A stretch of 64,000 nucleotides of DNA from Dendrobates tinctorius. Lineage: Eukaryota. Below are positions 6,222-62,177 of the stretch, one piece after another. Location of the stretch: assembly GCF_039654945.1 (NCBI RefSeq), contig NW_027361783.1, positions 13,392,001-13,456,000 on the forward strand. The letters run 5' to 3'. The position numbers and the translations under genes are program-made. Every line of letters begins with the position of its first letter. Positions within the stretch are counted from its first letter, which is position 1. The notes below the pieces were generated by a model. It saw nothing but the letters and a program-made list of their open reading frames with translations, was not told where the DNA came from and searched no databases.

Positions 6222-6275
6222 GCCATGCCCCCGAGGAAGCGGTATCTATACCATGAAACGCGCATTATGGGGTCT
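6222..6275 (+). ncRNA. Degenerate type I hammerhead ribozyme-like motif
   Basis: ccgagga (CUGAGGA with U>C), stem II ggtat-ct-atacc, then gaaa and cgcg; cleavage triplet and stem I are eroded. Confidence 0.5.
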
Positions 6276-13100: not shown

Positions 13101-13353
13101 AGGGGAAGAGTCCTGAGGAGAGAATTTGCATATTGCCAGTGCCTTCTGGGATAAGTGAAGAGTCTCTGCGAGCGCAACGATCACTGGATTTTGGCTGTTG
13201 CAGCTGAAAAGAGGAAACCGGTAAACCAGGGAAAGAGTCCTGAGGAGAGAATTTGCATAATCCCAGTGCCTTCTGGGATAAGTGAAGAGTCTCCGCAAGC
13301 TCAACGATCACTGGATTTTCGCTGTTGCAGCTGAAAAGAAGAAATCAGTAAAC
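13101..13353 (+). promoter_or_regulatory. Two 127-bp CR1 5'-UTR monomers, each with an ATTTGCAT octamer
   Basis: gagtcctgaggagagaatttgcata at 13108 and 13235. Confidence 0.6.
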
Positions 13354-13390
13354 CGATTGGCTCATTTTTCATCGCTTTAACAATACCAAT

Positions 13391-14353
13391 ATGGAAGAGG
13401 CCAGGAGCCATTTGGTGAGCTGCATTTCTTGCTACATGTTTACAGACTTACCAGTGGAAAAGCCAAACTTCACATGCCACAAATGCAAGCTTGTGTCTCT
13501 GTTGGAGGAAAAGTTGCAAAATCTTGAAGAGAGGATAGCTACATTGAAGATCATTAAGGAAGATGAAGAGTTCTTAGACAGAGCAGAATAATCTCTTCAT
13601 GTTACAGAAAGAGAAGAAATTCGAAGTGCACCTGAAGAAACGGAGGAATGGAAACATGTGACCCAGAGAAGCAGGAGGATCGGGAAGCGGTCAGCGCCCA
13701 TACTGCTAAAGAACCAGTACTAGGCCCTCACGCAGGAGAACAATGAAGAAATACATCAGGATAACACTTTCCCCACAAGCACCAACCTTGTACGTCTTCA
13801 GAATCCTCCTGGATGGAGAAAGAAAAATTTTATGAAGAAGAAACAGAGAGTGGTGGTAATAGGGGATTCCCTGTTGAGAGGAACAGAGGCTGCTATCTGC
13901 AGACCGGATATAACCTCAAGAGAAATGTGCTGTCTTCCAGGTGCAAACATTAAAGATGTGTCTGACAGGATATCAGGACTCTTCAGACCTACTGATGACT
14001 ACCCATTCCTGCTAATACATGTGGGGACAAATGACACAGCAAGAAACGACCTGGAAACCATCTGCAATGACTTTGAAAACTTAGGTAAGAAAGTGAAAGA
14101 ACTGGGAGCGCAGGTGGTCTTCTCTTCCATCCTCCCAGTGGATTGCCATGGAACAAGGAGGTGGAATAAGATTCTGCAAGTGAACAACTGGCTGCGTCAA
14201 TGGTGCCGTCAGCAAGGATTTGGACTTCTGGATCACGGAGTGAATTACCTATACGATGGACTACTTGCTAGAGATGAGGTGCAGCTTACAAAGACTGGAA
14301 AATATGTATTTGGAAGTCGCCTTGCTACAATCATCAGGAGAGTTTTAAACTAG
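13391..14353 (+). pseudogene. CR1 ORF1 (zinc finger/coiled coil plus SGNH esterase), with stops
   Basis: CISC...CHKC followed by a leucine-zipper-like stretch; VIGDSLLRG and HVGTND esterase motifs. Confidence 0.9.
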
Positions 14354-14502
14354 AACAATGTGGGAAGGGAAGAAAAAGGCCAGAAAAAGCCAAACACCTG
14401 ACAAATGCTATTGAGAACTCTGCTATTAGAAGTGGAAAGGAAGAACAAAGACAAAAGAATCTAATTAAGAAAAATATTGGAGAAAGAGAAACCAATCACA
14501 AA

Positions 14503-17155
14503 CTAAAATGTTTATATACTAATGCACAAAGCATGGGCAAACAAACAAGGAGAATTGGAACTACCAACGCAGGAAAAGAAATATGATGTCATTGGAATCA
14601 CTGAAACTTGTTGGGCAATACACATGATTGGAATACAAGGATAGAAGGATACAACTTATTTGCTAGAAACAAACTTGATAAACGAGGAGGAGGTGTCGCA
14701 TTGTATGTTACAAACACGTATATCGGCACAGAGATTGAAGCTACAGAGACTGGGAGTCCTGTGGAAACTGTTTGGGTAAGAATACAAGGACAGAACTATG
14801 GAAAGCACACCATTGTAGGCATTTACTACAAGCCGCCTCTGCAAGCTGAAGATATGGATGAACTCTTTATGCATCAAATGGCCAAGTTCTCCAAAAAATA
14901 TGACATAGTTGTCATGGGGGATTTCAACTATCCTGACATTTGTTGGGAATCTCTCTCAGGCAAAACTAACAGGTCAAGGAAATTCTTATCCTCTCTTGCT
15001 GACAACTTTATCTTCCAAAAGGTAGGGGAGAAAACAAGGGGAACTGCTACATTGGATCTAATCCTTATAAACAGGGAGGAAATGGTTGAGGAGGTAAAAG
15101 TGGCTGGGACCCTAGGAGGAAGCGACCATGCTATTTTAAAATTTTGGATAACTAAAGGAGGAAGACCTGTGAAGATTCAGACGTCAAGGTTAGATTTCAG
15201 AAAGGCAGATTTTAAGGGATTCAGAAAGAGAATTGGAGGGATCCAATGGCTGGATATCCTAAAGGACAAAAATGTCCAGGAAGGATGGGAAATCTTGAAA
15301 AATGAAATTATCAAAGCACAAACGTTAACAATTCCGAAAAGAGGGAAGAATAGGAAGCGTTTAAGGAAACCAGGATGGATGAACACAGAACTTAAGCACA
15401 TGCTAAAAAGGAAGAAAGAAATGTTTATAAAATGGAAAAAGGGAGGCATATCTAACGAAGAATATAATGCTGTCTGCAGAAATTGCAGGGCACAAATCAG
15501 ATTACTAAAGCTGACAATGAATTGAAGCTTGCAAGAGATGTCAAAAGCAATAATAAAGGATTTTGGTGATATGTCAAAAGTAAAAGAAAAGTCAAAGATG
15601 CTAAAGGATTTTTACAGGATGAAAATGATGAAATGGTAAGACAGGATGTTGAGAAGTCCGAACTTTTAAATTCCTATTTTGCATCTGTTTTCTCCCAGAA
15701 AGGAAATGTAAATGGTTCTTCACTGTCCTATTAAGGGAATAGAAGAATCCAGGATATCTATAAACAGAAAGTTAGTGAGGAAACACTTAGCTAACCTAAA
15801 TGAATTCAAGTCTCCAGGTCCAGATGAATTACACCCCAGATTTCTGAAGGAGATAGCAGAAGAAATTTTTGAACCCCTCTCCATAATCTTTGAAAATTCT
15901 TGGAGAACATGAGACGTCCCAGAAGACTGGAGAAGAGCAAATGTTGTTCCTATCTTGAAAAAGGGGAAGAAGGTGGACCCAGGGAACTATAGCCCGGTGA
16001 GTTTGACTTCTATACCAGGAAAGATCTTTGAACAAATTATTAAACAACATGTATGTAAGTACCTGGACAAGAATGAAGTGATTAAACAGAGTCAGCATGG
16101 GTTTGTAACTAATAAGTCATGTCAGACTAACTTAATTTCCTTCTATGACAGAATCACTGATTGGGTGGATCAAGGAAATGCTGTAGATATAGTATATCTT
16201 GACTTCAGCAAAGCATCTGACAAAGTATCTCACACAATCCTTATTGAAAAAATGACTAGGTATGGAATGGACAAGGCAACTGTTAGGTGGATTCAAAACT
16301 GGCTTAGTGATCGGACCCAAAGAGTGGTCGTAAATGGCTGCACATCCAGTTGGAAGAATCTCTCAAGTGGGGTACCACAGGGCTCTGTCCTGGGCCCTGT
16401 ATTGTTCAACATCTTTATCAACAATTTAGATGAAGGAATTGAGGGTAAACTGATTAAATTTTCTGATGACGCAAAGCTAGGAGGGATAGCTAATACTAGA
16501 GAAGAGAGAGAGAGGTTTTAAAAAGATATAAATAAACTGAAGCAGTGGGCAGCAACTAACAGAATGGTTTTTAACAGGGAAAAATGCAAAGTACTACATC
16601 TGGGCAATAAAAATGAAAAAAACATGTACAAAATGGGAGGAATAGGGCTAAGCAACAGCACATGTGAAAAAGACTTGGGTATACTAATTGATCACAGACT
16701 GAATATGAGTCAACAGTGTGATGCAGCAGCAAAAAAGGCAAATGCAATTCTTGGATGTATAAAAAGAAGCATACAGTCTAGATCACGTGAAGTCATAATT
16801 GCGCTCTACTCCTCTTTGGTCAGATCTCATCTGGAATACTGTGTCCAGTTTTGGGTGCCACATTTTAAAAAAGACATCAACAAACTGGAGCAAGTTCAGA
16901 AAAGAGCGACCAGAATGGTGACCAGTCTGCAAACCCAGTCTTATGAGGAAAGGTTGCAGCATTTGGGAATGTTTAGCTTGCAGAAGAGAAGATTGAGAGG
17001 AGACTTAATAGCTGTCTACAAGTATCTCAAGGGCTGTTACTTTGTAGAAGGATCATCTTTATTCTCATTTGCACAAGGAAAGACTAAAAACAATAGGATG
17101 ACACTGAATGGGAGGAGACACAGATTAGATATTAGAAAAAACTTTTTGACAGTTA
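14503..17155 (+). pseudogene. CR1 ORF2 (APE endonuclease plus reverse transcriptase), disrupted; last codons at 24541-24645
   Basis: [44 protein letters not shown] and FSDD motifs. Confidence 0.93.
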
Positions 17156-17769
17156 AGGGCCTTTTACACATAGCGACGCACCAGCGATAACGATAGCGAT
17201 CCGACAAGGCATAGATCGCTGGTGTGTCGTTACGTGATCGCTAGATAGCTTTCAAACAGTCCAATCTCGTCAACGACTCTAGAGAGATCAGCGATCTGCA
17301 TAGCGACCTCATTGCTCGTTGAGTACCTTTCACATTACTAAACAAAAACCGATTCAGACCTCAGTGGGCGTGCTTCAGCGTTTCATTTACAACACCCCTC
17401 AAGCACCGATTGGTGGTCACCGCTGCGCTGTCATTGGCCGGCGGCGTCATTAAAGAGGACGTAGTAGCGTTTCAGTTTAAATCTCTGGAGCGCTGTGGTT
17501 AGCTTCTAAACCAGCATTTTTCTCCCTAGAGACAAAAGTGCATTTTTGGTTTGATTTTGCTATTCGTCCTTCAGCAACCCTCTTGAAGACTCATCAGCGT
17601 TATTTTCGAATACCTCCATTTTTGAGACCATCTGAAGAATCAACAGTGCTAGTTACGTTATTTTTTTTTTCTCCTCCATAACTTTCGGATTTTTCACATT
17701 GTCAGAGGTCGGTTTATTTTGGTTCAAAAGTTATAATTTTTTTGTATGCAATTTTATTTGTTTTATTTT

Positions 17770-18560
17770 AGTTTAGTTTAGAAACCGCGCCCGCCCCCAT
17801 TTTTGTAATTGTGGAACGTGATACTTTTATAGGTCAGTGACCAAGCTTATGCGATTCAAACTCTTTTTTATCTAATGTATGTCCATTGTGTCCATATGCA
17901 CATGTCTGGTCAGCCATTTTAGTTTAGAAATTGCGCCCGCCCCCATTATTGTAATTGATGAACGTGATACTTTTATAGGTCAGCGACCAAGCTTATGCGA
18001 TTCAAACTCTTTTTTATCTTGTGTATGTCCATTGTCTCCATATGCACATGTCTGGGCAGCCATTTTAGTTTTGAAACCGCGCCCGCCCCCATTATTGTAA
18101 TTGTTGAACGTGATACTTTTATAGGTCAGCGACCAAGCTTATGCGATTCAAACTCTTTTTTATCTTGTGTATGTCCATTGTCTCCATATGCGCATGTCTG
18201 GGCAGCCATTTTAGTTTTGAAACCGCGCCCGCCCCCATTATTGTAATTGTTGAACGTGATACTTTTATAGGTCAGCGACCAAGCTTATGCGATTCAAACT
18301 CTTTTTTATCTTGTGTATGTCCATTGTCTCCATATGCACATGTCTGGGCAGCCATTTTAATTTTGAAACCGCGCCCGCCCCCATTATTGTAATTGTTGAA
18401 CGTGATACTTTTATAGGTCAGCGACCAAGCTTATGCGATTCAAACTCTTTTTTATCTTGTGTATGTCCATTGTGTCCATATGCACATGTCTGGGCAGCCA
18501 TTTTAGTTTAGAAACCAAGCCCGCCACCATTATTGTTATTGTTGAACGTGATACTTTTGA
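17770..18560 (+). repeat. 146-bp tandem repeat, about 5.4 copies, inside the Harbinger
   Basis: GC box (ccgcgcccgcccccat or variant) at 17785, 17931, 18077, 18223, 18369 and 18515. Confidence 0.95.
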
Positions 18561-18629
18561 ACCGTGCCGTAACTGAGCCACCATGCCAAAATGAAACGTT
18601 GTCACCATTTCCTTTTATTTTTTTTAAAG

Positions 18630-19891
18630 ATGGCAGCAAGTAGCCAAGTAGCAAGTAGCCAAGACATCATACGCCAATTTATTGACATGTATCGGTCAAT
18701 GCCCTGCCTCTGGAAGGTGAAGTCGCCAGACTACAGTAATAAGTACAAAAAGAAGGTTGCATATGAGAAACTTGTGCATCTATATCAAGAACATCATCCC
18801 AGCGAAACGGTAGATGAGGCTGTTATTAAAAAAAAAATACAAGCACTACGCACTGTCTACAAGAAGGAATTGAACAAGGTGGAAAAGTCTACTAGGTCGG
18901 GGGCGGGTACCGATGAAGTGTATGTTCCGAGGTTGTGGTACTACAACTTACTGGAGTTTACTCGAGACCAGGAAATCCCCTGGCTTATGCATTGTTCAAT
19001 GTCACTGCCTGAAGAGGAAGAAACAGTGACACGGCCTGATTCCCCTCTTGTCAATGTAAGTATGTTTTGGGTTTCCCTCAAAAAACCAATGATACATATT
19101 TATGTACATGCTATTGTTGAGTTTTAATGAGTGAGTCCATGATTTAAAACTTTGTTCACAGCTGATAACTGTACATCAGTAATTGGGTTATCATTACATA
19201 ATTTCTACAAATGGTCGATGTCAGTACATAGCCAGTACCACTTCTCCCCCCCTCATAATAATTTCTGTTATGTGTTTAGAAAAAACTCTTTTTAATTTTT
19301 CTGTGTTCTAACCTGGTTTTTCTGTTCTTGCAGCATGTTACAGAAGATGTCTCACCTACACCATGTGTCATACAGGAAACCCCAGCAACATCAAACGCAA
19401 CCGACGACAGGATGTCCATAATTGCAGAGGAGGCAAGTGTGTCCACGTGAGCGTACACTGTGCAAAGGCGTCTCCCAGTGAGTCGAAAAAGAAAGGCCAC
19501 CGCTCCTCCTTTTCCAGAGTTTGTCGATTTAGCAAAGAACATATTGGTGCTGCAGGAAAAACAAGCAATTGGTGGCTTTGCACACATGGTGGACGAAAGA
19601 CTTCGGTCTCTCGACGTAACGCAAAGGCTTCAGGTCGAGAGAATAATATTTGAAACGCTAAATAAAGCTGCCTTCGGAAAACTTACAGACAGTTATACTC
19701 TTGTTGATGGCTAGTCTATGTCACAAAACCCATGGCCGCAGACGCAAGAACATGTAACCAGCACGCCAAGAAGGATGATTCAGCCAATACAGAGCATGAA
19801 CTTTGGAACCCCACATTTCCAGTCTGCCCCATTCATAAATCCTGGAAGGCAGCAACTTAATGACTCTGACTGTTTTTACACTCAATTATAG
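18630..19891 (+). pseudogene. Harbinger MADF (Myb/SANT-like) DNA-binding protein; coding exons 18630-19055 and 19334-19891, two nonsense codons in exon 2
   Basis: FIDMYRSMPCLWKVKSPDYSNK...KKKIQALRTVYKKE...YVPRLWYY is MADF-like. A phase-0 gtaagt...ttgcag intron keeps the frame. The C-terminus resembles a BESS motif. aataaa at ~19998. Confidence 0.85.
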
Positions 19892-28613: not shown

Positions 28614-29503
28614 TGTTGTGAACACTCTTAACCTGACTTCTGAGTTTGGGCTCCCTCTGGTGGTGGCTGAGGGTAGTGTAGCTGGTCGGGTTGACAGAAG
28701 TCCATCACCTGAAGACGATGAGTGGAAGTCAGGTGTTACAGACTGGGAAGATTTAAGTGAGCAAGCTTCCCTCAGTTGCTGCTGGTGATTTGTTTTTCTT
28801 CCTGTGCATCTTGAAGTCTGCTTGTCCCCTGCTTGGTCCTGCACCATTCAGCTAAGCTATTTGTTTGCTGGAATCTTTTTGCATTTCATCCAGTTTTGCC
28901 TTTCTCTGCTTTCTGCTTTGCTGTGTGGGTTCAGCATTGTTCCCTGCTGGGACCAGTGCTGGACCCCGCTCCATATGCCACAGCTTATGTCAGTCTTGTC
29001 AGTATTGCTAATCCCTTGTTATAGCAGTGTCTTTGGTTTTCCTTCCAGTTAACACCAAAATGCTGATCTAGTGAGGGAGAGGTTGTGTGGCCTCAGTATT
29101 TTTGCATATCAGACATGTTGGATTTTTTAGGGTTCTTGCGTGATTGCAGACAGTATCTTTTCTATCTTGTGCTATCTAGATAGTTTGGGCTCCATCATTT
29201 GCTTACTCTATTTTCTGCCTGTGTTTGTGCCTCATCTTGTCTCATCGGCAATAATGTTTGGGGGCTATCTATTCTTTTGGGGTTCTGCTCCGGGGCAGTT
29301 TAGCTGTCCCCTTTCTTGCTTTAGGCTTAGTTAACACTTTGGCCGTGCCAAGGCGTCTAGGGCAACGTAGTTACGTCCCATGGCTAATTTTAATTGTGCT
29401 GTTAGGTTTAGGGGTCTGCAATCTGCTAAGTTGCCAACCTTAATGGTGTTCTGGTTGCCTAGCTTATTTCCCGGTTATCCTCCTCGGTGACCAAATCAAA
29501 ACA
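28614..29503. mobile_element. Solo LTR of a second family, inserted between the Gypsy primer site and gag
   Basis: tgttgtga...tcaaaaca ends; flanks cccagg/ccctgg; homologous along its length to 56348-57226 in inverted orientation. Confidence 0.85.
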
Positions 29504-41195: not shown

Positions 41196-42493
41196 TCATA
41201 AAAAAGGGACAAAACTATTTTTTTCAATTAATCTAAGGGGCGACATAGTGTCCAATGTAGCAATCCACTTGCATTCGTGTTGTGCCAAAATTTGTTTCTC
41301 ATTACCTCCTCGAATCCCGCTATTCACCCTTTTAATACCCCTAATCATCTGGCCCCGAGACTTGGCATTATGAAATAATATAAAATGTCTTGGGAGGGTT
41401 TTAAGTATTGAAAGGTCCAAGACATACTTTGCTGCCGAAATATCCCTAATATGCTCACGTGTGCGAGTATTCAATTCACGTGACATTAATCCAACATAGA
41501 TTTTTTTACATGGACACGTGGCATAATATACCACATTGGGGGTATAGCAAGAGATGTCATCTCTAATTTGGAATGTTTTAGCCCCATTAGAAGAAGTGAA
41601 AGATGTAGACATACAAATATTGGGGCAAGCACCACATTTGCCACAGGCGTAGCATCACACTGTGTGGGCAGTATTTATGAGAGGCGCTGGTGATTTAGGT
41701 ATATTGTGACTTCTCACTAATTGATCTTTCAAATTCATGCTCCGTCTAGGTATGACTCTGGGCCTCTGGGGCAAATGTGCTGTTAGAACATTATCAGTAT
41801 GTAAAATGGACCAATGTTTCAGCAAAATATTCCAGACACGATTCCTTTGACAGTTAAAAGTGAACACAAAAGAAATCGAATGATCATCCTTTTTTATCAA
41901 TGGATTTAGTCAGGAGTGCATCTTGAGGGGTGGCTTTGGCTCTACGGCATCCATTTTTTATGCATCTATTGCTATATCCCCATAACTTAAACTGCTGTTT
42001 AAGGTAAGTAGATTGCATCTCAAATCTGTCATTGGTGGAACAAATACAGCGGGTTCTCAAGAACTGACCCACTGATGACTGGTAGAATGTGCGCCGAGGA
42101 AGCATGAAGTAAAGAATTTATCGCAGTCTCCTTACGAAAGAGATCAACCTGTATTGACCCATCTGTTTCAACATACAGAAGTACATAAAGAAACTCAATT
42201 TTGATTTCTGCCATTTTTAGGTAAATTTCAAATTGAGTGCATTGGAGTTAAGGTTCATAATGAAGTCAACAAGATTGGATATAGGACCTTGTCAGATGAC
42301 AAAAACATCGTCAATGTAATGATGCCAGCACTGCACATGTTCGGCGGCCCGAGCTCTGTCCCCATGGAAAATCTGTCTCTCCCAATAGCTGAGAAACAGA
42401 TTTGCATAGGATGGAGCACATGCCGCACCCATGGCAGTGCCGCATTTCTGCAAATAGAATTTGTCTTTAAAGACAAATTAATTGTGTGACAAT
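41196..42493 (-). pseudogene. Penelope-like element: RT C-terminal half plus GIY-YIG endonuclease
   Basis: FVFKDKFYLQKCGTAMGAACAPSYANLF (42390-42480), DLFRKET, VVYYATCPCKKIYVG and ECKWIATLDT. Confidence 0.9.
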
Positions 42494-45400
42494 TAGTGTT
42501 GAGCATTCCGATACTGCAAATATCGGGTATCGGCCGATATTCGCTGTATTGGAATTCCGATACCGAGTACCAATATTTTTTCAATATCGGATATCGGAAT
42601 CGGAAGTTCCCATAATGCAAAGAGCCACTGCTGTGGCTCTGATTGGCTGCCGAAATGACGTCATCATGATGCGCCGTCAGTTCGGGCCTTCCGGAGGGAG
42701 GGGGGTCTGTGCCGACTGCCCGGGGCTCTGTACCGGCCTCCCGGTGGTCTGTGCCGACTGCCCGGGGGTCTGTACCGGCCTTCCGGGGGGCTGTGCCGGC
42801 CTGCCGGTGGTCTGTGCCGACAGCCCGGGGGTCTGTGCGGACTGCCGTGGGTCTGTACCAGCCTGCCGGTGGTCTGTACCGGCCTGCCGGGGGGCTGTGC
42901 CGACTGTCCGGGGGTCTGTGCAGGATCGTCCGATGGGACTACAAGTCCCATCGGGCGATGCCTGCTACCATGATGGTGATTGACACATTAGCCAATGATG
43001 GGACAGTAGTAGTCCCATCATCCGGCTAATGTGTTGAATGTACAAAAAAAAAAAAAATCCCTACTACATACATGCTACATGCATACTACATGCATACTAC
43101 ATGCTACATACATACTACATACATACTACATGCATACTACATACATGCTACATACATGCAACATATATACTACATACATGCTACATGCTACATACATACT
43201 ACATGCATACTACATGCTACATACATACTACATACATACTACATGCTGCATACATACTACATACATGCTACATACATGCAACATATATACTACATACATA
43301 CTACATGCTACATACATGCTACATACATGCAACATACATACATACATACTGCATATATACCACATGCATGCAACATGCATACTACATATATACTACATGC
43401 ATGCAACATGCATACTACATATATACCGGGGGTCTGTGCCGACTGTCCGAGGGTCTGTACCGGCCTGCCGGGGGGCTGTGCCGGCCTGCCGGTGGTCTGT
43501 ACCGACTGTCCGGGGGTCTGTGCAGGCTGCGGGGGTCTGTACCGGCCTGCCGGGGGGCTGTGCCGGCCTGCCGGTGGTCTGTACCGACTGTCCGGGGGTC
43601 TGAGCGGACTGCCGGGGGTCTGTACCGGCCTGCCGGGGGGCTGTGCCGGCCTGCCGGTGGTCTGTACCGACTGTCCGGGGGTCTGAGTGGACTGCCGGGG
43701 GTCTGTACCGGCCTGCCGGTGGTCTGTACCGACTGTCCGGGGGTCGGAGCGGACTGCCGGGGGTCTGTACCGGCCTGCCGCGGGGCTGTGCCGACTGTCC
43801 GGGGGTCTGTGCGGACTGCTGGGGGTCTGTACCGGCCTACCGGGGGGCTGTGCTGGCCTGCCGGGGGGCTGTGCCGGCCTGCCGGGGGGCTACTGTGCCG
43901 ACTCTCCGGGGATCTGTCCCGACTGTCCGGGGGTCTGAGCGGACTGCCGGGGGTCTGTACCGGCCTGCCGGGGGGCTGTGCCGGCCTGCTGGTGGTCTGT
44001 ACCGACTGTCCGGGGGGTCTGAGCGGACTGCCGGGGGTCTGTAGCGGCCTGCCGGGGGGCTGTGCCGGCCTGCCGGTGGTCTGTACCGACTGTCCGGGGG
44101 TCTGAGCGGACTGCCGGGGGTCTGTACCGGCCTGCCGGGGGGCTGTGCCGGCCTGCCGGTGGTCTGTACCGACTGTCCGGGGGTCTGAGCGAACTGCCGG
44201 GGGTCTGTACTGGCCTGCCGCGGGGCTGTGCCGACTGTCCGGGGGTCTGTGCCGACTGCCCGGGGGTCTGTGCGGACTGCCGGGGGTCTGTACCGGCCTA
44301 CCGGGGGGCTGTGCTGGCCTGCCGGGGGGCTGTGCCTGCCTGCCGGGGGGCTGTGCCGACTGTCCGGGGGTCTGTGCCGACTGCCCTGGGGTCTGTTCGG
44401 ACTGCTGGGGGTCTGTACCCGCCTACCGGGGGGCTGTGCTGGCCTGCCGGGGGGCTGTGCCGACTGTCCGGGGGTCTGAGCAGGCTGCGGGGGTCTGTGC
44501 AGGATTGTCCGATGGGACTACAAGTCCCATCGGGCGATGCCTGCTACCATGACGGTGATTGACACATTAGCCAATGATGGGACAGTAGTAGTCCCATCAT
44601 CCGGCCTATGTGTTGAATGTAAGAAAAAAAAAATACATACTACATACATACTACATGCTACATATATACTATATGCATGCAACATACATAGATACTGCAT
44701 ATATACCACATGCATGCAACATGCATACTACATATATACTACATGCATGCAACATGCATACTACATATATACCACATATACCGGGGGGCTGTGCCGACTG
44801 TCCGGGGGTCTGTGCCGACTGCCCGGGGGTCTGTACCGGCCTGCCGGGGGGCTGTGCCGGCCTGCCGGTGGACTGTACCGACTGTGGTGGGGTCTGTGCA
44901 GGCTGCGGGGGTCTGTACCGGCCTGCCGGGGGGCTGTGCCAGCCTGCCGGTGGTCTGTACCGACTGTCCGGGGGTCTGAGCGGACTGCCGGGGGTCTGTA
45001 CCGGCCTGCCAGGGGGCTGTGCCGGCCTGCCGGTGGTCTGTACCGACTGTCTGGGGGTCTGAGCGGACTGCCGGGGGTCTGTACCGGCCTGCCGGGGGGC
45101 TGTGCCGACTGTCCGGGGGTTTGTGCCGACTGCCCGGGGGTCTGTGCCGACTGCCGGGGGTCTGTACTGGCCTACCGGGGGGCTGTGCTGGCCTGGCGGG
45201 GGGCTGTGCCGGCCTGCCGGGGGCTGTGCCAACCATCCGGGGACTTGTAGTCCCATCGGGCGATGCCTGCTTGCTACCATGACGGTGATTGACACATTAG
45301 CCAATGATGGGACAGTAGTAGTCCCATCATCCGGCCTATGTGTTGAATGTAAGAAAAAAAAAAAATACATACTACATACATACTACATGCTACATACATA

Positions 45401-45538
45401 CTACATACATGCTACATACATGCAACATATATACTACATGCATGCAACATACATACATACTGCATATATACCACATGCATGCAACATGCATACTACATAT
45501 ATACTACATGCATGCAACATGCATACTACATATATACT

Positions 45539-46068
45539 TAGAAAATTAGGAAGGGGAAAGGGAAATTTGTGCTCACCAAAATAGTCCTGTAAGCCGGTCG
45601 TGCCTAGGGATCAAATGGCTGACCACCATGTGTTGCAAACATGAAGAGAGAAGGAAGATCCGGCACTGGAGACTTGATAAAATCCACGATAAGTTTTATT
45701 CACATAATTTCATGATAAAACCATGAAGGGGAAAACAGACCCCCCCCACGCCTGACGCGTTTCGAACCTTACACCAGGTTCTTCCTCAGAGACATGAAAC
45801 AAAACAGTTCACAAAATGATTATAAACATTCCTAATCAGCAGAGGGACTCCACACATGTGTATAATCAAAGAGGCAGACAACTAAGCCCTCAAATCACTG
45901 GTGGAGTCACTCCCTTGCAAGAAGAAAGAAAAAAAAAAAAAAAAAAGGAAAAGACTTATACAACAATGGACAAGACATAGAATAAATAAAAACATGTGCA
46001 ATACACACGTATAAATGCATAAATACATAGCAACTATCAAATGACAAACAAAAAAAAAAAAAAAAAAA
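45539..46068 (-). mobile_element. PLE terminal-repeat fragment inserted in the microsatellite
   Basis: Unique sequence with no counterpart in the mirror arm; contains a hammerhead motif. Confidence 0.7.
45747..45796 (-). ncRNA. Type I hammerhead ribozyme with minimal palindromic stem III
   Basis: Minus strand reads catgtct CTGAGGA a gaacc tggtgtaa ggttc GAAA cgcg TC aggcgtg: core intact, 7-bp stem I with G-U pairs, 5-bp stem II. Confidence 0.85.
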
Positions 46069-48339
46069 ATACTACATATATACTACATGCATGCAACATG
46101 CATACTACATATATACCACATATACCGGGGGGCTGTGCCGACTGCCCGGTGGTCTGTGCCGACTGCCCGGGGGTCTCTACCGGCCTGCCGGTGGTCTGTA
46201 CCGACTGTCCGGGGGTCTGTGCAGGCTGCGGGGGTCTGTACCGGCCTGGTGGGGGGCTGTGCCGGCCTGCCGGTGGTCTGTGCCGACTGCCCGGGGGTCT
46301 GTGCGGACTGCCGTGGGGCTGTGCGGACTGTCCGGAGGTCTGTGCAGGCTGCGGGGGTCTGTACCGGCCTGCCGGGGGGCTGTGCCGGCCTGCCGGTGGT
46401 CTGTACCGACTGTCCGGGGGTCTGAGCGGACTGCCGGGGGTCTGTACCGGCCTGCCGGGGGGCTGTGCCGGCCTGCCGGGCGGCTGTGCTGGCCTGCCGG
46501 GGGGCTGTGCCGACTGCCCGGGGGGGGTGAGCGGCCTGCCGGGGGTCTGTACCGGCCTGCTGGTGGTCTGTACCGGCCTGCCGGGGGGCTGTGCCAACTG
46601 TCCGGGGGTCTGTGCAGGCATCGTCCGATGGGACTACAAGTCCCATTGGGCGATGCCTGCTACCATGACGGTGATTGACACATTAGCCAATGATGGGACA
46701 GTAGTAGTCCCGTCATCCGGCCTATGTGTTGAATGTAAAAAAAAAAAAAAAAAACATACTACATACATACTACATGCTACATACATACTACATACTTGCT
46801 ACATACATACTACATACATACTACATGCTACATACATACATGCTACATACATGCAACATTTATACTACATGCATGCAGCATACATACATACTGCATATAT
46901 ACCACATGCATGCAACATGCATACTACATATATACCACATATATACTACATGCATGCATACTACATATATACCACATATACCGGGGGCTGTGTCGATTGT
47001 CCGGGGGGCTGTGCCGACTGCCCGGGGGTCTGTACCAGCCTGCCGGGGGGCTGTGCCGGCCTGCTGGTGGTCTGTACCGACTGTCCGGGGGTCTGTGCAG
47101 GCTGCGGGGGTCTGTACCGGCCTGCCGGGGGGTTGTGCTGGCCTGCCGGTGGTCTGAGCGGCCTGCCGGGGGTCTGTACTGGCCTGCCGGGGGTCTGTAC
47201 CGACCTGCCGGGGGGCTGTGCTGGCCTGCCGGTGGTCTATACCGACTGTCCGGGGGTCTGAGCAGGCTGCGGGGGTCTGTGCAGGATCGTCCGATGGGAC
47301 TACAAGTCCCATCGGGCGATGCCTGCTACCATGACGGTGATTGACACATTAGCCAATGATGGGACAGTAGTCCCATCATCCGGCCTATGTGTTGAATGTA
47401 AAAAAAAATAAAAATACATACTACATACATACTACATGCTACATACATACTACATGCATGCAACATACATACATACTACATGCAACGTGCATACTACATG
47501 CATGCAACATACATATATACTACATATATACTACATGCATGCAACATGCATACTACATATATACTACATGCATGCAACATACATACATACAACATATATA
47601 CTACATGCAAGCAACATGCATACTACATATATACCACATATATACTACATGCATGCAACATATATACTACATGCAACATGCATACTACATGCATGCAACA
47701 TACATACTACATATATATCACATGCATGCAACATGCATACTATATATATACCACATATATACTACATGCATGCAACATACATATATACTACATATATACT
47801 ACATGCATGCAACATGCATACTACATATATACCACATATATACTACATGCATGCAACATACATACAACATATATACTACATGCAAGCAACATGCATACTA
47901 CATATATACCACATATATACTACATGCATGCAACATATATACTACATGCAACATGCATACTACATGCATGCAACATACATACTACATATATATCACATGC
48001 ATGCAACATGCATACTATATATATATACCACATATATACTACATGCATGCAACATACATATATACTACATATATACCACATATATACTACATGCATGCAA
48101 CATATATATAATACATATATACTACATGCAACATACATACTACATATATACTACATATATACCACATGCATGCAACATGCATACTACATATATACTACAT
48201 ATATTCTACATGCATGCAACATACATACATACTACATATATACCACATGCATGCAACATGCATACTACATATATACTACATGCATGCAACATACATATAT
48301 ACTACATACAATACATTCATACAATACATACATATAGAC

Positions 48340-48990
48340 ATACAGTACATATAACATAGAGTACATACTCACTATCACTTGTCACTTTGATCCCCGAAGC
48401 CATTGTCGTCTATGGAATAAAGATTAAAATAACAAAGCACGAATATACTCACCCCTGATCCGCAGAAGTCCACGGGTGTCCCACAACGATCTTGCGTGGA
48501 GAACAGCAGCATCAGCTGATGCTACCGTTCTCTACGGGCTCCAGGAAACCAGTGTCGGGAGGTAGGTATCCTTCCGCCCTGTATTCCTCTGCCACTGTAA
48601 AGAAAAAAAAAGTCCCTAGTCTCATTTCATGGCATTGCTGTGTGAAAAATTTCCGATGCAGCTTTTGCCATAAAGTGAGACTAGGGACTTTTTTTTTTTT
48701 TTTTTCTACACTGGCGGAGGAATACAGGGTGGAAGGATACCTACCTCCCGACACTGGTTTCCTGGGCCCCGTAGAGAACGGTAGCATCAGCTGATGCTGC
48801 AGTTCTCCACGCAAGATCGTCGTGGGACTCTTGTGGATTTCTGCGGATCAGGGAGTATATTGTTTGTTTGTTATTTTAATATTTATTCCAAAAATGACAA
48901 TGGCTTCGGGGATCAAAGTGACAAGTGATGGTGAGTATGTACTCTATGTTATATGTACTGTATGTCTATATGTATGTATTGTATGAATGT
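48340..48990. repeat. Central near-perfect inverted repeat of the foldback (arms ~300 bp, ~30-bp spacer at 48634-48665)
   Basis: Mirror ORFs 48492-48794(+) and 48512-48814(-) translate almost identically. Confidence 0.95.
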
Positions 48991-49033
48991 ATTGTATGTA
49001 GTATATATGTATGTTGCATGCATGTAGTATATA

Positions 49034-50670
<1,637 letters not shown>

Positions 50671-50672
50671 TA

Positions 50673-53600
50673 TGTAGAATGCATGTTGCATGCATGTGGT
50701 ATATATGTAGTATGTTTGTATGTTGCATGCATGTAGTATATATGTATGTTGCATGCATGTAGTATATATGTATTATATATGTAGTATGCATGTTGCATGC
50801 ATGTGGTATATATGTAGTATGTATGTAGTATGTATGTTGCATGTAGTATATATGTATTATATATATATGTTGCATGCATGTAGTATATATGTATGTTGCA
50901 TGCATGTAGTATATACTGTGTGTGGTATATATATAGTATGCATGTTGCATGCATGTGGTATATATGTAGTATGTATGTTGCATGTAGCATATATGTATTA
51001 TATATATGTTGCATGCATGTAGTATATGTGTAGTATATATGTATGTTGCATGCATGTAGAATATATGTAGTATATATGTAGTATGCATGTTGCATGCATG
51101 TGGTATATATGTAGTACATATGTAGTATGTATGTTGCATGTAGTATATATGTATTATATATGTTGCATGCATGTAGTATAATGTAGTATATATGTATGTT
51201 GCATGCATGTAGTATATATGTGGTATATATATAGTATGCATGTTGCATGCATGTGGTATATATGTAGTATGTATGTTGCATGCATGTAGTATATATGTAG
51301 TAAGCATGTTGCATGTAGTATATATGTATGTTGCATGCATGTAGTATATATGTTGTATGTATGTTGCATGCATGTAGTATATATGTGGTATATATAGTAT
51401 GTATGTTGCATGCATGTGGTATATATGTAGTATGTATGTTGCATGCATGTAGTATATATGTAGTAAGCATGTTGCATGTAGTATATATGTATGTTGCATG
51501 CATGTAGTATATATGTTGTATGTATGTTGCATGCATGTAGTATATATGTATGTTGCATGCATGTAGTATATATGTAGTATGCATGTTGCATGTAGTACAT
51601 ATGTATGTTGCATTCATGTAGTATATATGTGGTATATATGTAGTATGCATGTTGCATGCATGTGGTATATATGTAGTATGTATGTTGCATGCATGTAGTA
51701 TATATGTAGTATGCATTTTGCTTGTAGTATATATGTATGTTGCATGCATGTAGTATATATGTGGTATGTATGTATGTTGCATGCATGTTGCATGTAATAT
51801 GTATGTTGCATGCATGTAGTATATATGTAGTATATATGTATGTTGCATGCATGTAGTATGCATGTTGCATGTAGTATGTATGTATGTTGCATGCATGTAG
51901 TATGTATGTAGCATGTATGTAGTATGTATGTAGCATGTAGTATGTATGTAGTATGTATTTTTTTTTACATTCAACACATAGGCCGGATGATGGGACTACT
52001 ACTGTCCCATCATTGGCTAATGTGTCAATCACCGTTATGTGGCAGGCATCGCCCGATGGGACTTGTAGTCCCATCGGACGATCCTGCACAGACCCCCGGC
52101 AGTCCACTCAGACCCCCGGACAGTCGGTACAGACCACCGGCAGGCCGGCACAGCCCCCCGGCAGGCCGGTACAGACCCCCGCAGCCTGCACAGACCCCCG
52201 GACAGTCGGTACAGACCACCGGCAGGCTGGTACAGACCCCCGGCAGTCCTCTCAGACCCCCGGACAGTCGGTACAGACCACCGGCAGGCCGGCACAGCCC
52301 CCTGGCAGTCCGCACAGACCCCCGGGCAGTCAGTACAGACCACCGGCAGGCCGGCACAGCCCCCCGGCAGTCCGCACAGACCCTCGGGCAGTCGGTACAG
52401 ACCACCGGCAGGCCGGCACAGCCCCCCGCAGCCTGCACAGACACCAGGGCAGTCGGTACAGACCACCGGCAGGCCAGCACAGCCCCCCGGCAGTCCGCAC
52501 AGACCCTCGGGCAGTCGGTACAGACCACCGGCAGGCCGGTACAGACCCCCGCAGCCTGCACAGACCCCCGGACGGTCGGTATAGACCACCGGCAGGCCGG
52601 CACAGCCTCCCGGCAGGCCGAAACAGACCCCCAGGCAGTCGGCACAGCCCCCCGGTATATGTGGTATATATGTAGTATGCATGTTGCATGCATGTGGTAT
52701 ATATGCAGTATGTATGTATGTTGCATGCATGTAGTATATATGTTGCATGTATGTAGTATGTATGTAGCATGTATTTTTTTTTTTCTTACATTCAACACAT
52801 AGGCCGGATGATGGGACTACTACTGTCCCATCATTGGCTAATGTGTCAATCACCGTCATGATAGCAGGCATCGCCCAATGGGACTTGTAGTCCCATCGGA
52901 CGATCCTGCACAGACCCCCGGCAGTCCGCTTAGACCCCCGGACAGTCGGTACAGACCACCGGCAGGCCGGCACAGCCCCCCGGCAGGCCGGTACAGACCC
53001 CCACAGCCTGCACAGATCCCCGGACAGTCGGTACAGACCACCGGCAGGCCGGCACAGCCCCCCGGCAGGCCGGTACAGACCCCGGGCAGTCCGCTCAGAC
53101 CCCCGGACAGTCGGTACAGACCACCGGCAGGCCGGCACAGCCCCCCGGCAGGCCGGTACAGACCCCCGGCAGTCCGCTCAGACCCCAGGACAGTCGGTAC
53201 AGACCACAGGCAGGCCGGCACATCCCCCCGGCAGGCCGGTACAGACCCCCGGCAGTCCGCTCAGACCCCAGGACAGTCGGTACAGACCACCGGCAGGCCG
53301 GCACAGCCCCCCGGCAGGCCGGTACAGAACCCCGCAGCCTGCACAGACCCCCGGACAGTCAGTACAGACCACCGGCAGGCCGGCACAGCCCCCCCGGCAG
53401 GCCGGTACAGACCCCCAGCAGTCCGCTCAGACCCCAGGACAGTCGGTACAGACCACAGGCAGGCCGGCACATCCCCCCGGCAGGCCGGTACAGACCCCCG
53501 GCAGTCCGCTCAGACCCCCGGACAGTCGGTACAGACCACCGGCAGGCCGGCACAGCCCCCCAGCAGGCCTGTACAGACCCCCGGCAGTCCGCTCAGACCC

Positions 53601-56100
53601 CCGGACAGTCGGAACAGACCACAGGCAGGCCGGCACATCCCCCCGGCAGGCCGGTACAGACCCCCGGCAGTCCGCTCAGACCCCCGGACAGTTGGTACAG
53701 ACCACCAGCAGGCCGGCACAGCCCCACGGCAGGCTGGTACAGACCCCCGGGCAGTCGGCACAGACCCCCAGACAGTCGGCACAGCCCCCCGGTATATGTG
53801 GTATATATGTAGTATGCATGTTGCATGCATGTAGTATATATGTAGTATATATGTAGTATGCATGTTGCATGCATGTAGTATATATGTGGTGTATATGTAG
53901 TATGCATGTTGCATGCATGTGGTATATATGTTGCATGTATGTAGCATGTATGTAGTATGTATGTAGCATGTAGTGTGTATGTAGTATGTGTTGTTTTTTT
54001 TGTTTTTTTACATTCAACACATAGGCCGGATGATGGGACTACTACTGTCCCATCATTGGCTAATGTGTCAATCACCGTCATGGTAGCAGGCATCGCCCGA
54101 TGGGACTTGTAGTCCCATCGGACGATCCTGCACAGACCCCCGGCAGTCCGCTCAGACCCCCGGACAGTCGGTACAGACCACCGGCAGGCCGGCACAGCCC
54201 CCCGGCAGGCCGGTACAGACCCCCGCAGCCTGCACAGACCCCCGGACAGTCGGTACAGACCACCGGCAGGCCGGCACAGCCCCCCGGCAGGCCGGGACAG
54301 ACCCCCGGCAGTCCGCTCAGACCCCCGGACAGTCGGTACAGACCACCGGCAGGCCGGCACAGCCCCCCGGCAGGCCGGTACAGACCCCTGGCAGTCTGCT
54401 CAGACCCCCAGACAGTCGGTACAGACCACCGGCAGGCCGGCACAGCCCCCGGCAGGCTGGTACAGACCCCCGGCTGTCCGCTCAGACCCCCGGACAGTCA
54501 GTACAGACCACCGGCAGGCCGGCACAGCCCCCCGGCAGGCCAGTACAGACCCCCGCAGCCTGCACAGACCCCCGGACAGTCGGTACAGACCACAGGCTGG
54601 CCGGTACAGACCCCCGGCAGTCCGCTCAGACCCCCGAACAGTCGGTACAGACCACCGGCAGGCCAGCACAGCCCCCCGCCAGGCCGGTACAGACCCCTGG
54701 CAGTCTGCTCAGACCCCCAGACAGTCGGTACAGACCACCGGCAGGCCGGCACAGCCCCCGGAAGGCTGGCACAGACCCCCGGCTGTCCGCTCAGACCCCC
54801 GGACAGTCAGTACAGACCACCGGCAGGCCGGCACAGCCCCCCGGCAGGCCAGTACAGACCCCCGCAGCCTGCACAGACCCCCGGACAGTCGGTACAGACC
54901 ACCGGCTGGCCGGTACAGACCCCCGGCAGTCCGCTCAGACCCCCGAACAGTCGGTACAGACCACCGGCAGGCCGGCACAGCCCCCCGGCAGGCCGGTACA
55001 GACCCCTGCACAGACCCCCGGACAGTCGGTACAGACCACCGGCAGGCCGGCACAGCCCCTCGGCAGGCCGGTACAGACCCCCGGCAGTCCGCTCAGACCC
55101 CCGGACAGTCGGTACAGTCCCCCGGCAGGCCGGCACAGCCCCCCGGCAGGCCCGTACAGACCCCCGCAGCCTGCACAAACCCCCGCACAGTCGGTACAGA
55201 CCACCAGCAGGCCGGTACAGACCCCTGGCAGTCCGCACAGACCCCTGGACAGTCGGTACAGACCCCCGGCAGTCTGCACAGACCCCCGGCAGGCCGGCAC
55301 AGACCCCCGGCAGGCCGGTACAGACCCCCGGCAGTCCGCTCAGACCCCCGGCAGGCCGGCACAGACCCCCGGCAGGCCGGCACAGACCCCCGGACAGTCG
55401 GCACAGCCCCCCGGTATATGTGGTATATGTGTAGTATGCATGTAGTATATATGTAGTATGCATGTTGCATGCATGTGGCATATATGTTGCATGTATGTAT
55501 GTAGCATGTAGTATGTATGTAGTATGTATGTAGCATGTATGTAGCATGTATGTAGTATGTATGTAGCATGTAGTATGTAGTATATATGTTGCATGTATGT
55601 AGCATGTATGTAGTATGTATGTAGCATGTAGTATGTATGTAGTATGTAGTATGTATGTAGCATGTATGTAGTTTGTATTTTTTTTTTGTACATTCAACAC
55701 ATTAGCCGGATGATGGGACTACTACTGTCCCATCATTGGCTAATGTGTCAATCACCGTCATGATAGCAGGCATCGCCCGATGGGACTTGTAGTCCCATCG
55801 GACGATCCTGCACAGACCCCCGCAGTCTGCTCAGACCCCCGGACTGTCGGTACAGACCACCGGCAGGCCAGCACAGCCCCCCGCAGCCTGCACAGACACC
55901 CGGGCAGTCGGTACAGACCACCCGCAGGCCAGCACAGCCCCCCGACAGTCCGCACAGACACCCGGGCAGTCGGTACAGACCACCGGCAGGCCGGCACAGC
56001 CCCCCGCAGCCTGCACAGACACCCGGGCAGTCGGTGCAGACCACCGGCAGGCCGGTACAGACCCCCGGCAGTCCGCACAGACACCCGGGCAGTCGGCACA
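50673..56100 (-). repeat. Right arm: inverted copy of the composite repeat, 4 modules
   Basis: Reverse-complement modules at ~51957, 52775, 53993 and 55677. Confidence 0.92.
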
Positions 56101-56347
56101 GACCTCCGGAAGGTCCGTACACCCCCCGAGAGGCTGTACAAGGAGAGAAAAGGGTTTTTCTTATTCCGATACCGGAAGTCCCATAGACTTGAATGGGACT
56201 TCCGGTATCAGAATCGGCGATACCCGATACTTTTTTCGTATCGGGCCGATACCATCCGATCCGATATTTTAGGGTATCGGATGGTATCGCTCAACACTAG
56301 TGTCAATACAAACTCCAATAGCTCCAGTAGGAACTCAAACCAGTGAC

Positions 56348-57226
56348 TGTTATGAATGGGTCCCCGAGGAGGATGGCAGGAACAGGCTAAGCCACCAGAA
56401 AACCAGAGAGGTTGGTAACTAAGCAGATCACAGACCCCTGATCCTATCCACACAACTAGCAGTAGCCGTGGAGCGTACCTACGATGCCCTAGACGCCTCG
56501 GCACAGCCGGAGAGCTAACTAAGCCTAAAGCAAGAAAGATGAAATCTAAACTGCCCCGGAGAAGACCCCAAAGGAATAGATAGCCCCCAAACATATATTG
56601 TCGGTAAGACAAGATGAAACACAAATGCAGGCAGAAAAATAGACTGAGCAAATGATGGGGCCCAAACTGACTAGACAGAATAGGAAAGGAAAGACACTGT
56701 CTGCAATCACGCAAAAAACCCTGCAAAATCCAACACATCTGATGTACAAAAAACACTGAAGTCACACGACTTCGCCCCCACTATATCAGCACTCCGGTAT
56801 TAACTGGAAGCAAAGCAAAAGAGATCAATATAACAGGGGACTGAACAAACTGACACAAGCAGTAACATATGGAGCAGTGGTCCAGCACAGCCCCCAGCAG
56901 GAGCAAGCTGAACCCGCACAACAAGCAGAGATAGACAAAACCAGATCAGATGCAAAGGATTAGCCAATGAATCACTTAGCTGGAAAATGCAGGAACAGGG
57001 CAGGAGACATCACACCTCTGAATGCACAGGAAAGCAATCACCAGCAGGGATTGCAGGAAGTCTGCAGACTTAATTACTCCAATCCATAACCCCAGATCTC
57101 CAATCGTCATCATCATCACCAAGTGGCAGACCTCTGTCAATCTGGCCAGCTCCACTACCTCCAGTAACCACCAGAGAGAGCAGGGGGAGCTTCAGCTCAG
57201 AAGTCTGAGCCAGGGAATTCACAACA
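56348..57226. mobile_element. Solo LTR, same family as 28614-29503
   Basis: tgttatga...tcacaaca ends; flanks agtgac/agtggc; interrupts the PLE RT. Confidence 0.85.
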
Positions 57227-57500
57227 AGTGGCCATCCCGGCTAGTCATCTTGAGATAAAAAAAATGAATCGCAGTAAGGCCATCAACATGACCTATTGAC
57301 ATGTAGAGAGATTCAATGTCAATGGCCACAAGGACCATGTCATCCTCCAAGTGAATCCCATTGATCTTATTAACTAGATTGACGTATCCCTGACATAGGA
57401 GGGCAAAAGTTTCAGCAATTGATTTTAGATAGAAATCAATAAATTTGCATGTCATATCACAAAGCCCTCTTATGCCAGAAACAATGAGCCCAACAAACAG
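57227..57500 (-). pseudogene. Upstream part of the same PLE RT (continues via 56300-56347 to 42493)
   Basis: IVSGIRGLC...FIDFYL and LVAIDIESLYMSI, followed by FLLELLEFVL. Confidence 0.85.
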
Positions 57501-57911
57501 GATCTCCATGCATGCGTTGTGACTGTCACACAGCAATGAAAAATGCAGCTGCGGTGTTGAACAGATGATTATTGGGAGCGTTACAGGTATCCAGGTTGCC
57601 GATGCAGCTATTCAGTAAGCGCTATAGCTTTTTGGAAAAGAACTTATCCGAAGCTATTTGCTCATCCCTAGTAGTAACATTATAATAAGGAAACAATACA
57701 TTAGGTGTAAGATGTCAGAGTCAAATGTCAAACTCAGATGTCAGAGTCAGATATCAGTCATATGTTAAAGTCACATATCAAAGTCAGATGTCAAAGTCAT
57801 ATTTCAGATTCAGATTTCAAAGTCAGATGTTAATGTCAGTTCTCAGACAGGGTATTTAGCCTCACACTGACATTATTCTGATGTTTGACTTTGATTATGT
57901 TTTTTAATTGG

Positions 57912-60574: not shown

Positions 60575-62177
60575 CAGTGGGGAAAAAAAGTATTTAGTCA
60601 GTCAGCAATAGTGCAAGTTCCACCACTTAAAAAGATGAGAGGCGTCTGTAATTTACATCATAGGTAGACCTCAACTATGGGAGACAAACTGAGAAAAAAA
60701 AATCCAGAAAATCACATTGTCTGTTTTTTTTTTCATTTTATTTGCATATTATGGTGGAAAATAAGTATTTGGTCAGAAACAAAATTTCATCTCAATACTT
60801 TGTGATATATCCTTTGTTGGCAATGACAGAGGTCAAACGTTTTCTGTAAGTCTTCACAAGGTTGCCACACACTGTTGTTGGTATGTTGGCCCATTCCTCC
60901 ATGCAGATCTCCTCTAGAGCAGTGATGTTTTTGGCTTTTCGCTTGGCAACACGGACTTTCAACTCCCTCCAAAGGTTTTCTATAGGGTTGAGATCTGAAG
61001 ACTGGCTAGGCCACTCCAGGACCTTGAAATGCTTCTTACGAAGCCACTCCTTCGTTGCCCTGGCGGTGTGCTTTGGATCATTGTCATGTTGAAAGACCCA
61101 GCCACGTTTCATCTTCAATGCCCTTGCTGATGGAAGGAGGTTTGCACTCAAAATCTCACGATTAATGGCCCCATTCATTCTTTCATGTACCCGGATCAGT
61201 CGTCCTGGCCCCTTTGCAGAGAAACAGCCCCAAAGCATGATGTTTCCACCACCATGCTTTACAGTAGGTATGGTGTTTGATGGATGCAACTCAGTATTCT
61301 TTTTCCTCCAAACACGACAAGTTGTGTTTCTACCAAACAGTTCCAGTTTGGTTTCATCAGACCATAGGACATTCTCCCAAAACTCCTCTGGATCATCCAA
61401 ATGCTCTCTAGCAAACTTCAGACGGGCCCGGACATGTACAGGCTTAAGCAGTGGGACACGTCTGGCACTGCAGGATCTGAGTCCATGGTGGCGTAGTGTG
61501 TTACTTATGGTAGGCCTTGTTACATTGGTCCCAGCTCTCTGCAGTTCATTCACTAGGTCCCCCCGCGTGGTTCTGGGATTTTTGCTCACCGTTCTTGTGA
61601 TCATTCTGACCCCACAGGGTGGGATTTTGCGTGGAGCACCAGATCGAGGGAGATTATCAGTGGTCTTGTATGTCTTCCATTTTCTAATTATTGCTCCCAC
61701 AGTTGATTTCTTCACTCCAAGCTGGTTGGCTATTGCAGATTCAGTCTTCCCAGCCTGGTGCAGGGCTACAATTTTGTTTCTGGTGTCCTTTGACAGCTCT
61801 TCGGTCTTCACCATAGTGGAGTTTGGAGTCAGACTGTTTGAGGGTGTGCACAGGTGTCTTTTTATACTGATAACAAGTTTAAACAGGTGCCATTACTACA
61901 GGTAATGAGTGGAGGAAAGAGGAGACTCTTAAAGAAGAAGTTACAGGTCTGTGAGAGCCAGAAATCTTGATTGCTTGTTTCTGACCAAATACTTATTTTC
62001 CACCATAATATGCAAATAAAATGAAAAAAAAACAGACAATGTGATTTTCTGGATTTTTTTTTCTCAGTTTGTCTCCCATAGTTGAGGTCTACCTATGATG
62101 TAAATTACAGATGCCTCTCATCTTTTTAAGTGGTGGAACTTGCACTATTGCTGACTGACTAAATACTTTTTTCCCCA

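Follow-up and report, generated by a model that had tools for sequence, protein, structure and literature searches.

Most of what is known about foldback elements comes from insects, sea urchin, nematodes and plants, where they have Mutator or P ends, cause inversions and seed satellites. In vertebrate DNA, long palindromes are normally unstable. The original prediction for a 64,000-nucleotide stretch of the Dendrobates tinctorius genome (contig NW_027361783.1, positions 13,392,001 to 13,456,000; hereafter the window) placed a 13.8-kb hAT-ended foldback at positions 42494-56299. Our results confirm this observation, with corrections. The interpretation given with it is partly supported: the element is a hAT-ended foldback, but its origin from a small MITE (miniature inverted-repeat transposable element) that was inflated arm by arm is not supported. 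The best explanation, to which we give a probability of roughly 80%, is that an old copy, now immobile, of a hAT-type DNA transposon lies at this locus; the transposon is non-autonomous and occurs at high copy in dendrobatid frogs, and its interior is a long imperfect palindrome.

The closest systems in architecture are FB, Galileo (P superfamily) and Tetris of Drosophila, in which long inverted arms of tandem repeats surround a middle domain (PMC4079207, PMC3573991). Like these elements, the frog element has no coding capacity, a modular and variable structure and a link to satellite DNA. Unlike them, it is found in a vertebrate host and is hAT-like, not P or Mutator. The long arms of the Drosophila elements are terminal repeats that reach the tips, whereas here the tips belong to two dissimilar ends of about 190 bp that share an 11-bp perfect terminal inverted repeat (TIR). 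The target duplications differ as well: Galileo duplicates 7 bp, Tetris 8-10 bp and the frog element 8 bp with the pattern nTnnnnAn. Arms that dominate the element and consist of tandem repeats are present; arms that reach the tips, and Mutator- or P-type ends with their duplications of 9-10 bp or 7 bp, are not. The element works like a Drosophila-type foldback, yet does not fit that group in its tips and its duplication.

In its ends, the element is closer to non-autonomous hATs and to Hermes and Tol2, which have an 8-bp nTnnnnAn duplication, a short TIR and dissimilar ends of about 150-450 bp with sub-terminal repeats (PMC10368747). As in other non-autonomous hATs, mobilisation would occur in trans. 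Unlike typical hAT MITEs (<1 kb), it is a multi-kb palindrome of satellites, and its 13,806 bp (about 11.6 kb without nested transposable elements) exceed the usual MITE size of less than about 800 bp. Satellite arrays in an amphibian DNA transposon and a self-pairing single strand also relate it to frog and fish MITEs that fold as hairpins or contain or give rise to tandem repeats, namely Xstir/Xmix and miDNA4 of Xenopus and Angel of zebrafish (PMC9659126, PMC12628747). Those elements belong to other superfamilies (miDNA4 to Tc1/mariner), are small and carry one type of array, whereas the frog element has mirrored composite arrays of two satellites and a unique module. Another Xenopus element, 1723, duplicates 8 bp and has tandem repeats inside; we do not count it among these comparisons.

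A different comparison is offered by the double Ds of maize, in which one Ds is inserted into another, so that copies of the ends lie internally and the element is prone to rearrangement. Double Ds, too, is a hAT element whose interior is arranged in inverted orientation. Unlike double Ds, the left end of the frog element has a single match in the window, and the right end matches itself and a separate element at 4767-4927 only. Nesting of the double-Ds type is rejected, since BLAST within the window finds no internal copy of either end.

The host is a Penelope-like retroelement, into which the element inserted in one piece, producing an 8-bp duplication. The two tips are identical over 11 of 11 positions (chance 2.4e-7 for one fixed position pair), and the flanking octamers GTGACAAT and GTGTCAAT agree in 7 of 8 (P=3.8e-4 at fixed positions), both as originally predicted. 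The prediction had also stated that excision restores the host's reverse transcriptase (RT), and it does. When the element and one octamer are removed in silico, the minus strand reads ..LEFVL(S/T)HN*FVFKDKFYLQKCGTAMG...YIDD, the same string as predicted; across the junction the rejoined reading is ..HWFEFLLELLEFVL(S/T)HN*FVFKDKFYLQKCGTAMGAACAP...YIDD.. The stop in this string is a property of the decayed host, not of the junction.

Penelope-like elements are laid out as an RT followed by a GIY-YIG domain. On the minus strand, the order at this locus is an RT motif-A-like piece, the junction, a piece with RVT_1 and YIDD, and a GIY-YIG-like piece (Table 1). This order indicates one decayed Penelope-like copy that was split by one insertion. 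Pfam reports nothing above cutoff for the host pieces, the sole match being the weak RVT_1, and the closest ESM Atlas clusters of the GIY-YIG-like piece are eukaryotic GIY-YIG fragments (score 0.97). Two independent insertions, each with its own target duplication, are rejected because target duplication and host frame both close across the element. An unclassified repeat of about 590 bp is found at 56348-56929 and at 28912-29503 (-), with 79% identity between the copies; the first of them also interrupts the Penelope-like host of the hAT element, at a distance of 48 bp from it.

Ordinary hAT-type ends, dissimilar to each other, make up only the outer ~190 bp of either side, with a short TIR and clustered TATCGG motifs. 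TIRs of hAT elements are short (about 10-25 bp) and their tip consensus is YARNG, which the TAGTG tip of the 11-bp perfect TIR fits. The octamers GTGACAAT, GTGTCAAT and GTTATGAT, the last being the flank of a second element, all have T as their second and A as their seventh base, so that the nTnnnnAn pattern (Hermes/hobo type) is seen in three octamers from two independent sites only. Beyond the TIR, the outer 193 and 185 bp align loosely and are not mirror images, apart from scattered motifs. TATCGG/CCGATA occurs four times in the end of the second element and not at all in the interior; together with the two ends in Table 1, these ends hold 17 of the 23 sites of the window, and the other six are spread over the ~50 kb outside the element. 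All 13 GGTATCG/CGATACC sites of the window are in the three ends, none in the 13.4-kb interior. For Hermes the nTnnnnAn pattern, dissimilar ends and short sub-terminal repeats have been described, and Tol2 needs its terminal 200 and 150 bp (PMC10368747).

The second element supports the same assignment. The outer 162 bp of the right end are found again as its right end, down to the same last base. It spans window positions 1-4927, with its left end beyond the window start, and its cargo consists of a 199-bp satellite repeated 19 times (97% matches; 1-3838) and about 900 bp of A/G-rich sequence. Since the same ~160-bp end stands in front of unrelated cargo, the right end is a portable module. 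The frog element agrees with hAT elements in every feature that could be tested from the sequence, and it is probably a non-autonomous member of hAT type.

Table 1. Positions of the element, its parts, its host and related features in the 64,000-nucleotide window
Feature	Position	Strand	Remarks
Left target-site duplication, 8 bp, GTGACAAT	42486-42493		fits nTnnnnAn
Left TIR, 11 bp, TAGTGTTGAGC	42494-42504	+	
Left end, unmirrored	42494-42686	+	7 TATCGG/CCGATA motifs; CCAAT-like and TGACGTCA stretch
Left arm, composed of G (21-bp GC-rich satellite), module U and A (11-bp AT-rich satellite) in five units	42687-48368	+	begins CCTTCCGGAGG
U1	42922-43063	+	partner 55678-55809, 98.5%; pair shares private three-site variant
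U2	44501-44633	+	partner 53994-54129, 97.7%
U3	45240-45366	+	without right-arm partner; first hairpin inverted relative to the other eight copies
U4	46616-46752	+	partner 52774-52907, 97.8%
U5	47283-47415	+	partner 51958-52085, 97.0%
Nested poly(A) retroposon, 530 bp	45539-46068	+	left arm; 15-bp duplication (TACTACATATATACT)
Central non-satellite hairpin	48369-48934		arms ~270 bp, 89-91% alike; asymmetric loop ~18-25 nt around 48641-48665
Mirrored double-change site pairs	48524/48782, 48548/48758, 48552/48754, 48555/48751, 48559/48747, 48578/48728, 48808/48498, 48913/48390		
Right arm, four units, reverse complement of left arm	48935-56114	-	finishes CCTCCGGAAGG
Nested Tc1/mariner, 1,637 bp	49034-50670	+	right arm; TA duplications at 49032-33 and 50671-72; ~210-bp inverted ends
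U', innermost, right arm	51958-52085	-	
U', second, right arm	52774-52907	-	
U', third, right arm	53994-54129	-	
U', outermost, right arm	55678-55809	-	
Right end, unmirrored	56115-56299	-	6 TATCGG/CCGATA motifs
Right TIR, 11 bp, exact reverse complement of TAGTGTTGAGC	56289-56299	-	
Right target-site duplication, 8 bp, GTGTCAAT	56300-56307		
Host piece, Cys-rich, GIY-YIG-like	41199-41654	-	ESM Atlas look-alike 0.97 and motifs by eye
Host piece with YIDD	42295-42477	-	Pfam; weak RVT_1 match (E 0.003, below cutoff)
Host piece, RT motif-A-like	57222-57611	-	by eye, no Pfam match
Right end of second element	4767-4927	+	91% identical over 162 bp, same last base; flank GTTATGAT

The foldback architecture stands as well. 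The mirrored part (42687-56114) makes up 97% of the element and forms one long imperfect palindrome with arms of 21-bp and 11-bp satellites, and base composition and skews change sign between the two halves. We mapped the composite units with tandem-repeat and inverted-repeat scans and with BLAST of the unique module U (~135 bp), and recovered the five left and four right units of the original prediction. U occurs five times on the plus strand and four times on the minus strand, each copy between a G and an A satellite, and on the right arm both satellites are present as reverse complements.

The centre is less perfect than predicted. Instead of a near-perfect palindrome of about 650 bp, there is one of 566 bp without satellite, or 764 bp at 89.8% with the adjoining satellite, and the central arms differ by 30 mismatches around an asymmetric loop. 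A computed single-stranded DNA fold of the centre gives one near-continuous hairpin (-274 kcal/mol, z = -38.8). The cruciforms or long double-stranded RNA proposed for the element would correspond to this computed hairpin of the centre. The hairpin centre, at about 48652, lies away from the geometric middle of the annotated element because the 1,637-bp Tc1 sits in the right arm; without both nested insertions it is near the middle. A separate MITE at the centre is rejected, since the palindrome continues unbroken from the unique centre into the flanking satellite.

To compare the arms, we took out the nested transposable elements and made a global alignment of the left arm and the reverse-complemented right arm. 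The arms are collinear, with 93.4% identity over 4,680 interior columns. Arm-to-arm identity is 93-98% in the A arrays, 88-93% in the G arrays 90.7% in the centre and 97.0-98.5% in the paired U modules (Table 1). Module order and relative array sizes are mirrored (G arrays left/right 221/319, 1075/1285 and 300/570 bp). The outermost U of each arm share a three-site variant that the seven inner copies do not have. Such collinear, mirrored arms with a private U variant mean that either the arrays existed before they were mirrored or the arms were copied onto each other.

Only one unit, U3+A3 (45240-46124), has no partner, and in the alignment a single right-arm array (53792-52908) stands opposite two left arrays, G3 and G4. 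The pattern resembles the loss of one U+A unit by recombination between G arrays, although a gain on the left is possible. The remaining arm-specific differences are indels of 40-250 bp, which is the size expected from slippage. The arm divergence of about 7%, the slippage-sized indels, the partnerless unit and the two nested insertions are later changes to an element that had its mirror image before.

Contigs from three frog species show that the parent element already carried the mirror image. The central stretch is present in 20 public runs from nine studies and at least four organisms. We aligned Logan contigs of four runs from three organisms to 48200-49100. In these runs, the centre is covered by 3,925-19,291 short contigs per run, with identities of 85-100%. 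The loop positions 48646 and 48650 are crossed by 19-42 distinct contigs in each organism's deepest run. They extend 21-36 nt from the loop positions to the contig end and come in many variants in three frog species, while none of the aligned contigs spans the whole centre. Since the turn-around is multi-copy in three species, it must have been inherited and was not built at this locus, and it appears to be older than these three species if copies are inherited vertically.

The same contigs also show which way this copy has changed. The majority base of family or other-species contigs repairs at least 13 of its 30 arm mismatches. Hence, the parental hairpin was better matched, and this copy has decayed. 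Decayed and of unusually large size, it belongs to a common frog family and is not a one-off.

Several points weigh against our explanation. The divergence between the arms is uneven: the centre has diverged by 9.3% (25/269) and the U pairs by 2.3% (12/530), a fourfold difference (Fisher p=2e-5) that would not be expected from one clean duplication with even decay thereafter. There is no hAT transposase, and none with these ends, within the 64-kb window, so that the superfamily assignment is based on cis features. Only 48 bp of host (~16 codons) directly adjoin the right side of the element, because 56348-56929 is another repeat. The contigs, at 80-130 nt, are too short to show the full multi-kb mirror in other copies. 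Lastly, satellite lengths and unit counts come from the assembly alone.

How could such an element have arisen and moved? A hAT transposase acting in trans could have moved it by reading the TIR and the TATCGG motifs. The foldback would have originated by inverted duplication of an ancestor that already carried the arrays, and a likely route to it would be strand switching in the course of replication or gap repair. By snapping back and pairing, the arms might then draw together the two ends of an element of more than 10 kb. At this locus the element would now be inert DNA, and its main effect may be that of a long hairpin-prone tract.

One could also argue that one arm served as the template of the other and that the mirror was in this way maintained or restored, through hairpin gene conversion or hairpin-templated repair at transposition, in which case the arrays may postdate the palindrome. 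This argument concerns the origin of the symmetry and is compatible with a hAT foldback. The uneven divergence speaks in its favour, as U and A modules are far more alike between the arms than the centre is, and even the A array beside the centre has an arm-to-arm divergence of only 3.1%. Moreover, among the variants listed (40 of 70) there are eight mirrored central site pairs (Table 1) at which the two arms agree with each other and differ from the depth-majority base of the family contigs. With 5% divergence per arm, chance alone would yield about 0.2 of these double changes. They hint at a possible signature of arm-to-arm copying in this lineage, although a contig from a palindrome could derive from either arm, and that the family majority is symmetric is an assumption. 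The present copy, in turn, has decayed without becoming symmetric again: it has 30 central mismatches, an unpaired unit and two nested elements that each sit in one arm. We therefore regard arm copying as a tentative possibility.

It is also conceivable that the foldback is the working design of the family. Pairing of the arms would bring the dissimilar ends next to each other, the arms would be made symmetric again at each move by hairpin-templated repair or conversion, and read-through transcripts, as long and perfect hairpin RNAs, would feed silencing of the family. If this were true, a satellite-laden element of more than 10 kb could be mobilised as efficiently as a MITE. Such a design is hinted at solely by the double substitutions at mirrored central sites and by the close similarity of the U pairs, and we doubt that it is correct. 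None of the runs that contain the central stretch is recorded as RNA; six runs guessed to be RNA contain 12-16% of the sampled central words.

Alternatively, the ends might come from another cut-and-paste superfamily that can produce 8-bp duplications. Candidates are P-like ends, Mutator-like ends as in most foldbacks, or Zisupton. Published foldbacks are indeed mostly assigned to Mutator, with Galileo in P (PMC4079207), and no transposase is linked to these ends within the window. On the other hand, the nTnnnnAn pattern is present in all three octamers, the TAGTG tip fits YARNG, and Tetris, which is assigned to Mutator, has duplications of 8-10 bp. A short TIR in front of ~190-bp dissimilar, motif-rich ends is what is found in Hermes and Tol2 (PMC10368747). 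Hence, ends of a different superfamily seem quite improbable to us, and hAT remains the assignment that we prefer.

The original prediction had explained the arms differently, by independent tandem expansion in each arm of a small hAT MITE, at or after insertion. It could point to unit numbers of five and four, to array lengths that differ between the arms (G 1075 vs 1285 bp, A 955 vs ~1390 bp) and to inter-arm indels in satellite-sized steps. Independent expansion is not expected to yield arms that share order, relative sizes and private variants, that are collinear at 93.4% and whose U partners are 97-98.5% identical. Furthermore, the alignment of G3 and G4 to a single right array fits the loss of a U+A unit better than growth, and the turn-around, present in three species, is older than the locus. 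Expansion arm by arm is thus very unlikely.

Finally, long satellite-rich palindromes are hard to assemble and our check rested on Logan contigs only, but it is extremely unlikely that the mirror was made by a chimeric, palindromic read or by faulty inverted joining, since the arms are ~7% apart with many indels, each contains a nested element of its own that has a separate duplication, TIR and target duplication close the outer ends inside one host element, and contigs from independent samples and species bridge the loop.

The Tc1 element and the poly(A) retroposon (Table 1) are later insertions that were absent from the original prediction, and the retroposon is not part of the family. The nested Tc1 has a transposase open reading frame (ORF) that matches HTH_Tnp_Tc3_2, HTH_SB and DDE_3 and is interrupted by one in-frame stop. 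The element contains no other real ORF, as the remaining long ORFs run through satellites. All unique modules are shorter than 600 bp, and the element therefore has no gene of its own, in line with the claim that it encodes no transposase. A second Tc1/mariner at 60792-61814 (-) has an uninterrupted 340-aa transposase ORF with the same three domains (HTH_Tnp_Tc3_2, HTH_SB and DDE_3). LINE, Ty3-like, Harbinger and Penelope-like sequence makes up the rest of the window.

A few further observations concern the ends and the modules. Just beyond the mirrored interior, the left end contains at 42625-42686 a perfect TGACGTCA site together with ATTGG, a CCAAT-like box, which may be the remnant of a promoter. 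U modules also carry two inverted CCAAT-containing stretches. The right end can form a hairpin with a 17-bp stem (GATACCGGAAGTCCCAT, loop, complement), conserved in both elements at ~56163-56214 and 4792-4843, and each U module has its GGGACT..AGTCCC core in both of its hairpins. The first small hairpin of U3 (45240-45268) is flipped, so that the loop ACAA reads TTGT; a flip of this kind is expected from strand switching within a hairpin. Just outside the second element there is a further Penelope-like GIY-YIG fragment (~4950-5340, +), and so both end-family elements of the window adjoin Penelope-like DNA.

The Rfam gathering scan of 42000-57500 gave no family, and a metagenome scan with a 20-mer of the U module found nothing. 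With the 17-nt right tip, the metagenome scan gave 69 loci, and BLAST of the element modules against them found only chance matches of 19-33 nt. In our literature search joining hAT with foldback, no such description was found. The published genome papers of the dyeing poison frog and the strawberry poison frog report abundant hAT elements and make no mention of foldbacks or palindromes.

What does this element tell us about foldbacks and about frogs? The locus itself is an old dead copy, and its value is that of a clear layered specimen, not of a functional element. If several poison-frog species have a multi-kb hAT-ended foldback in high copy number, foldback architecture would be seen to evolve in a third superfamily and in vertebrates. 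Such a foldback would also show that a cut-and-paste element can carry and mirror whole composite satellite arrays. This would bear on how frog genomes of more than 6 Gb grow and how satellites spread in them, and on how long palindromes persist in vertebrate DNA.

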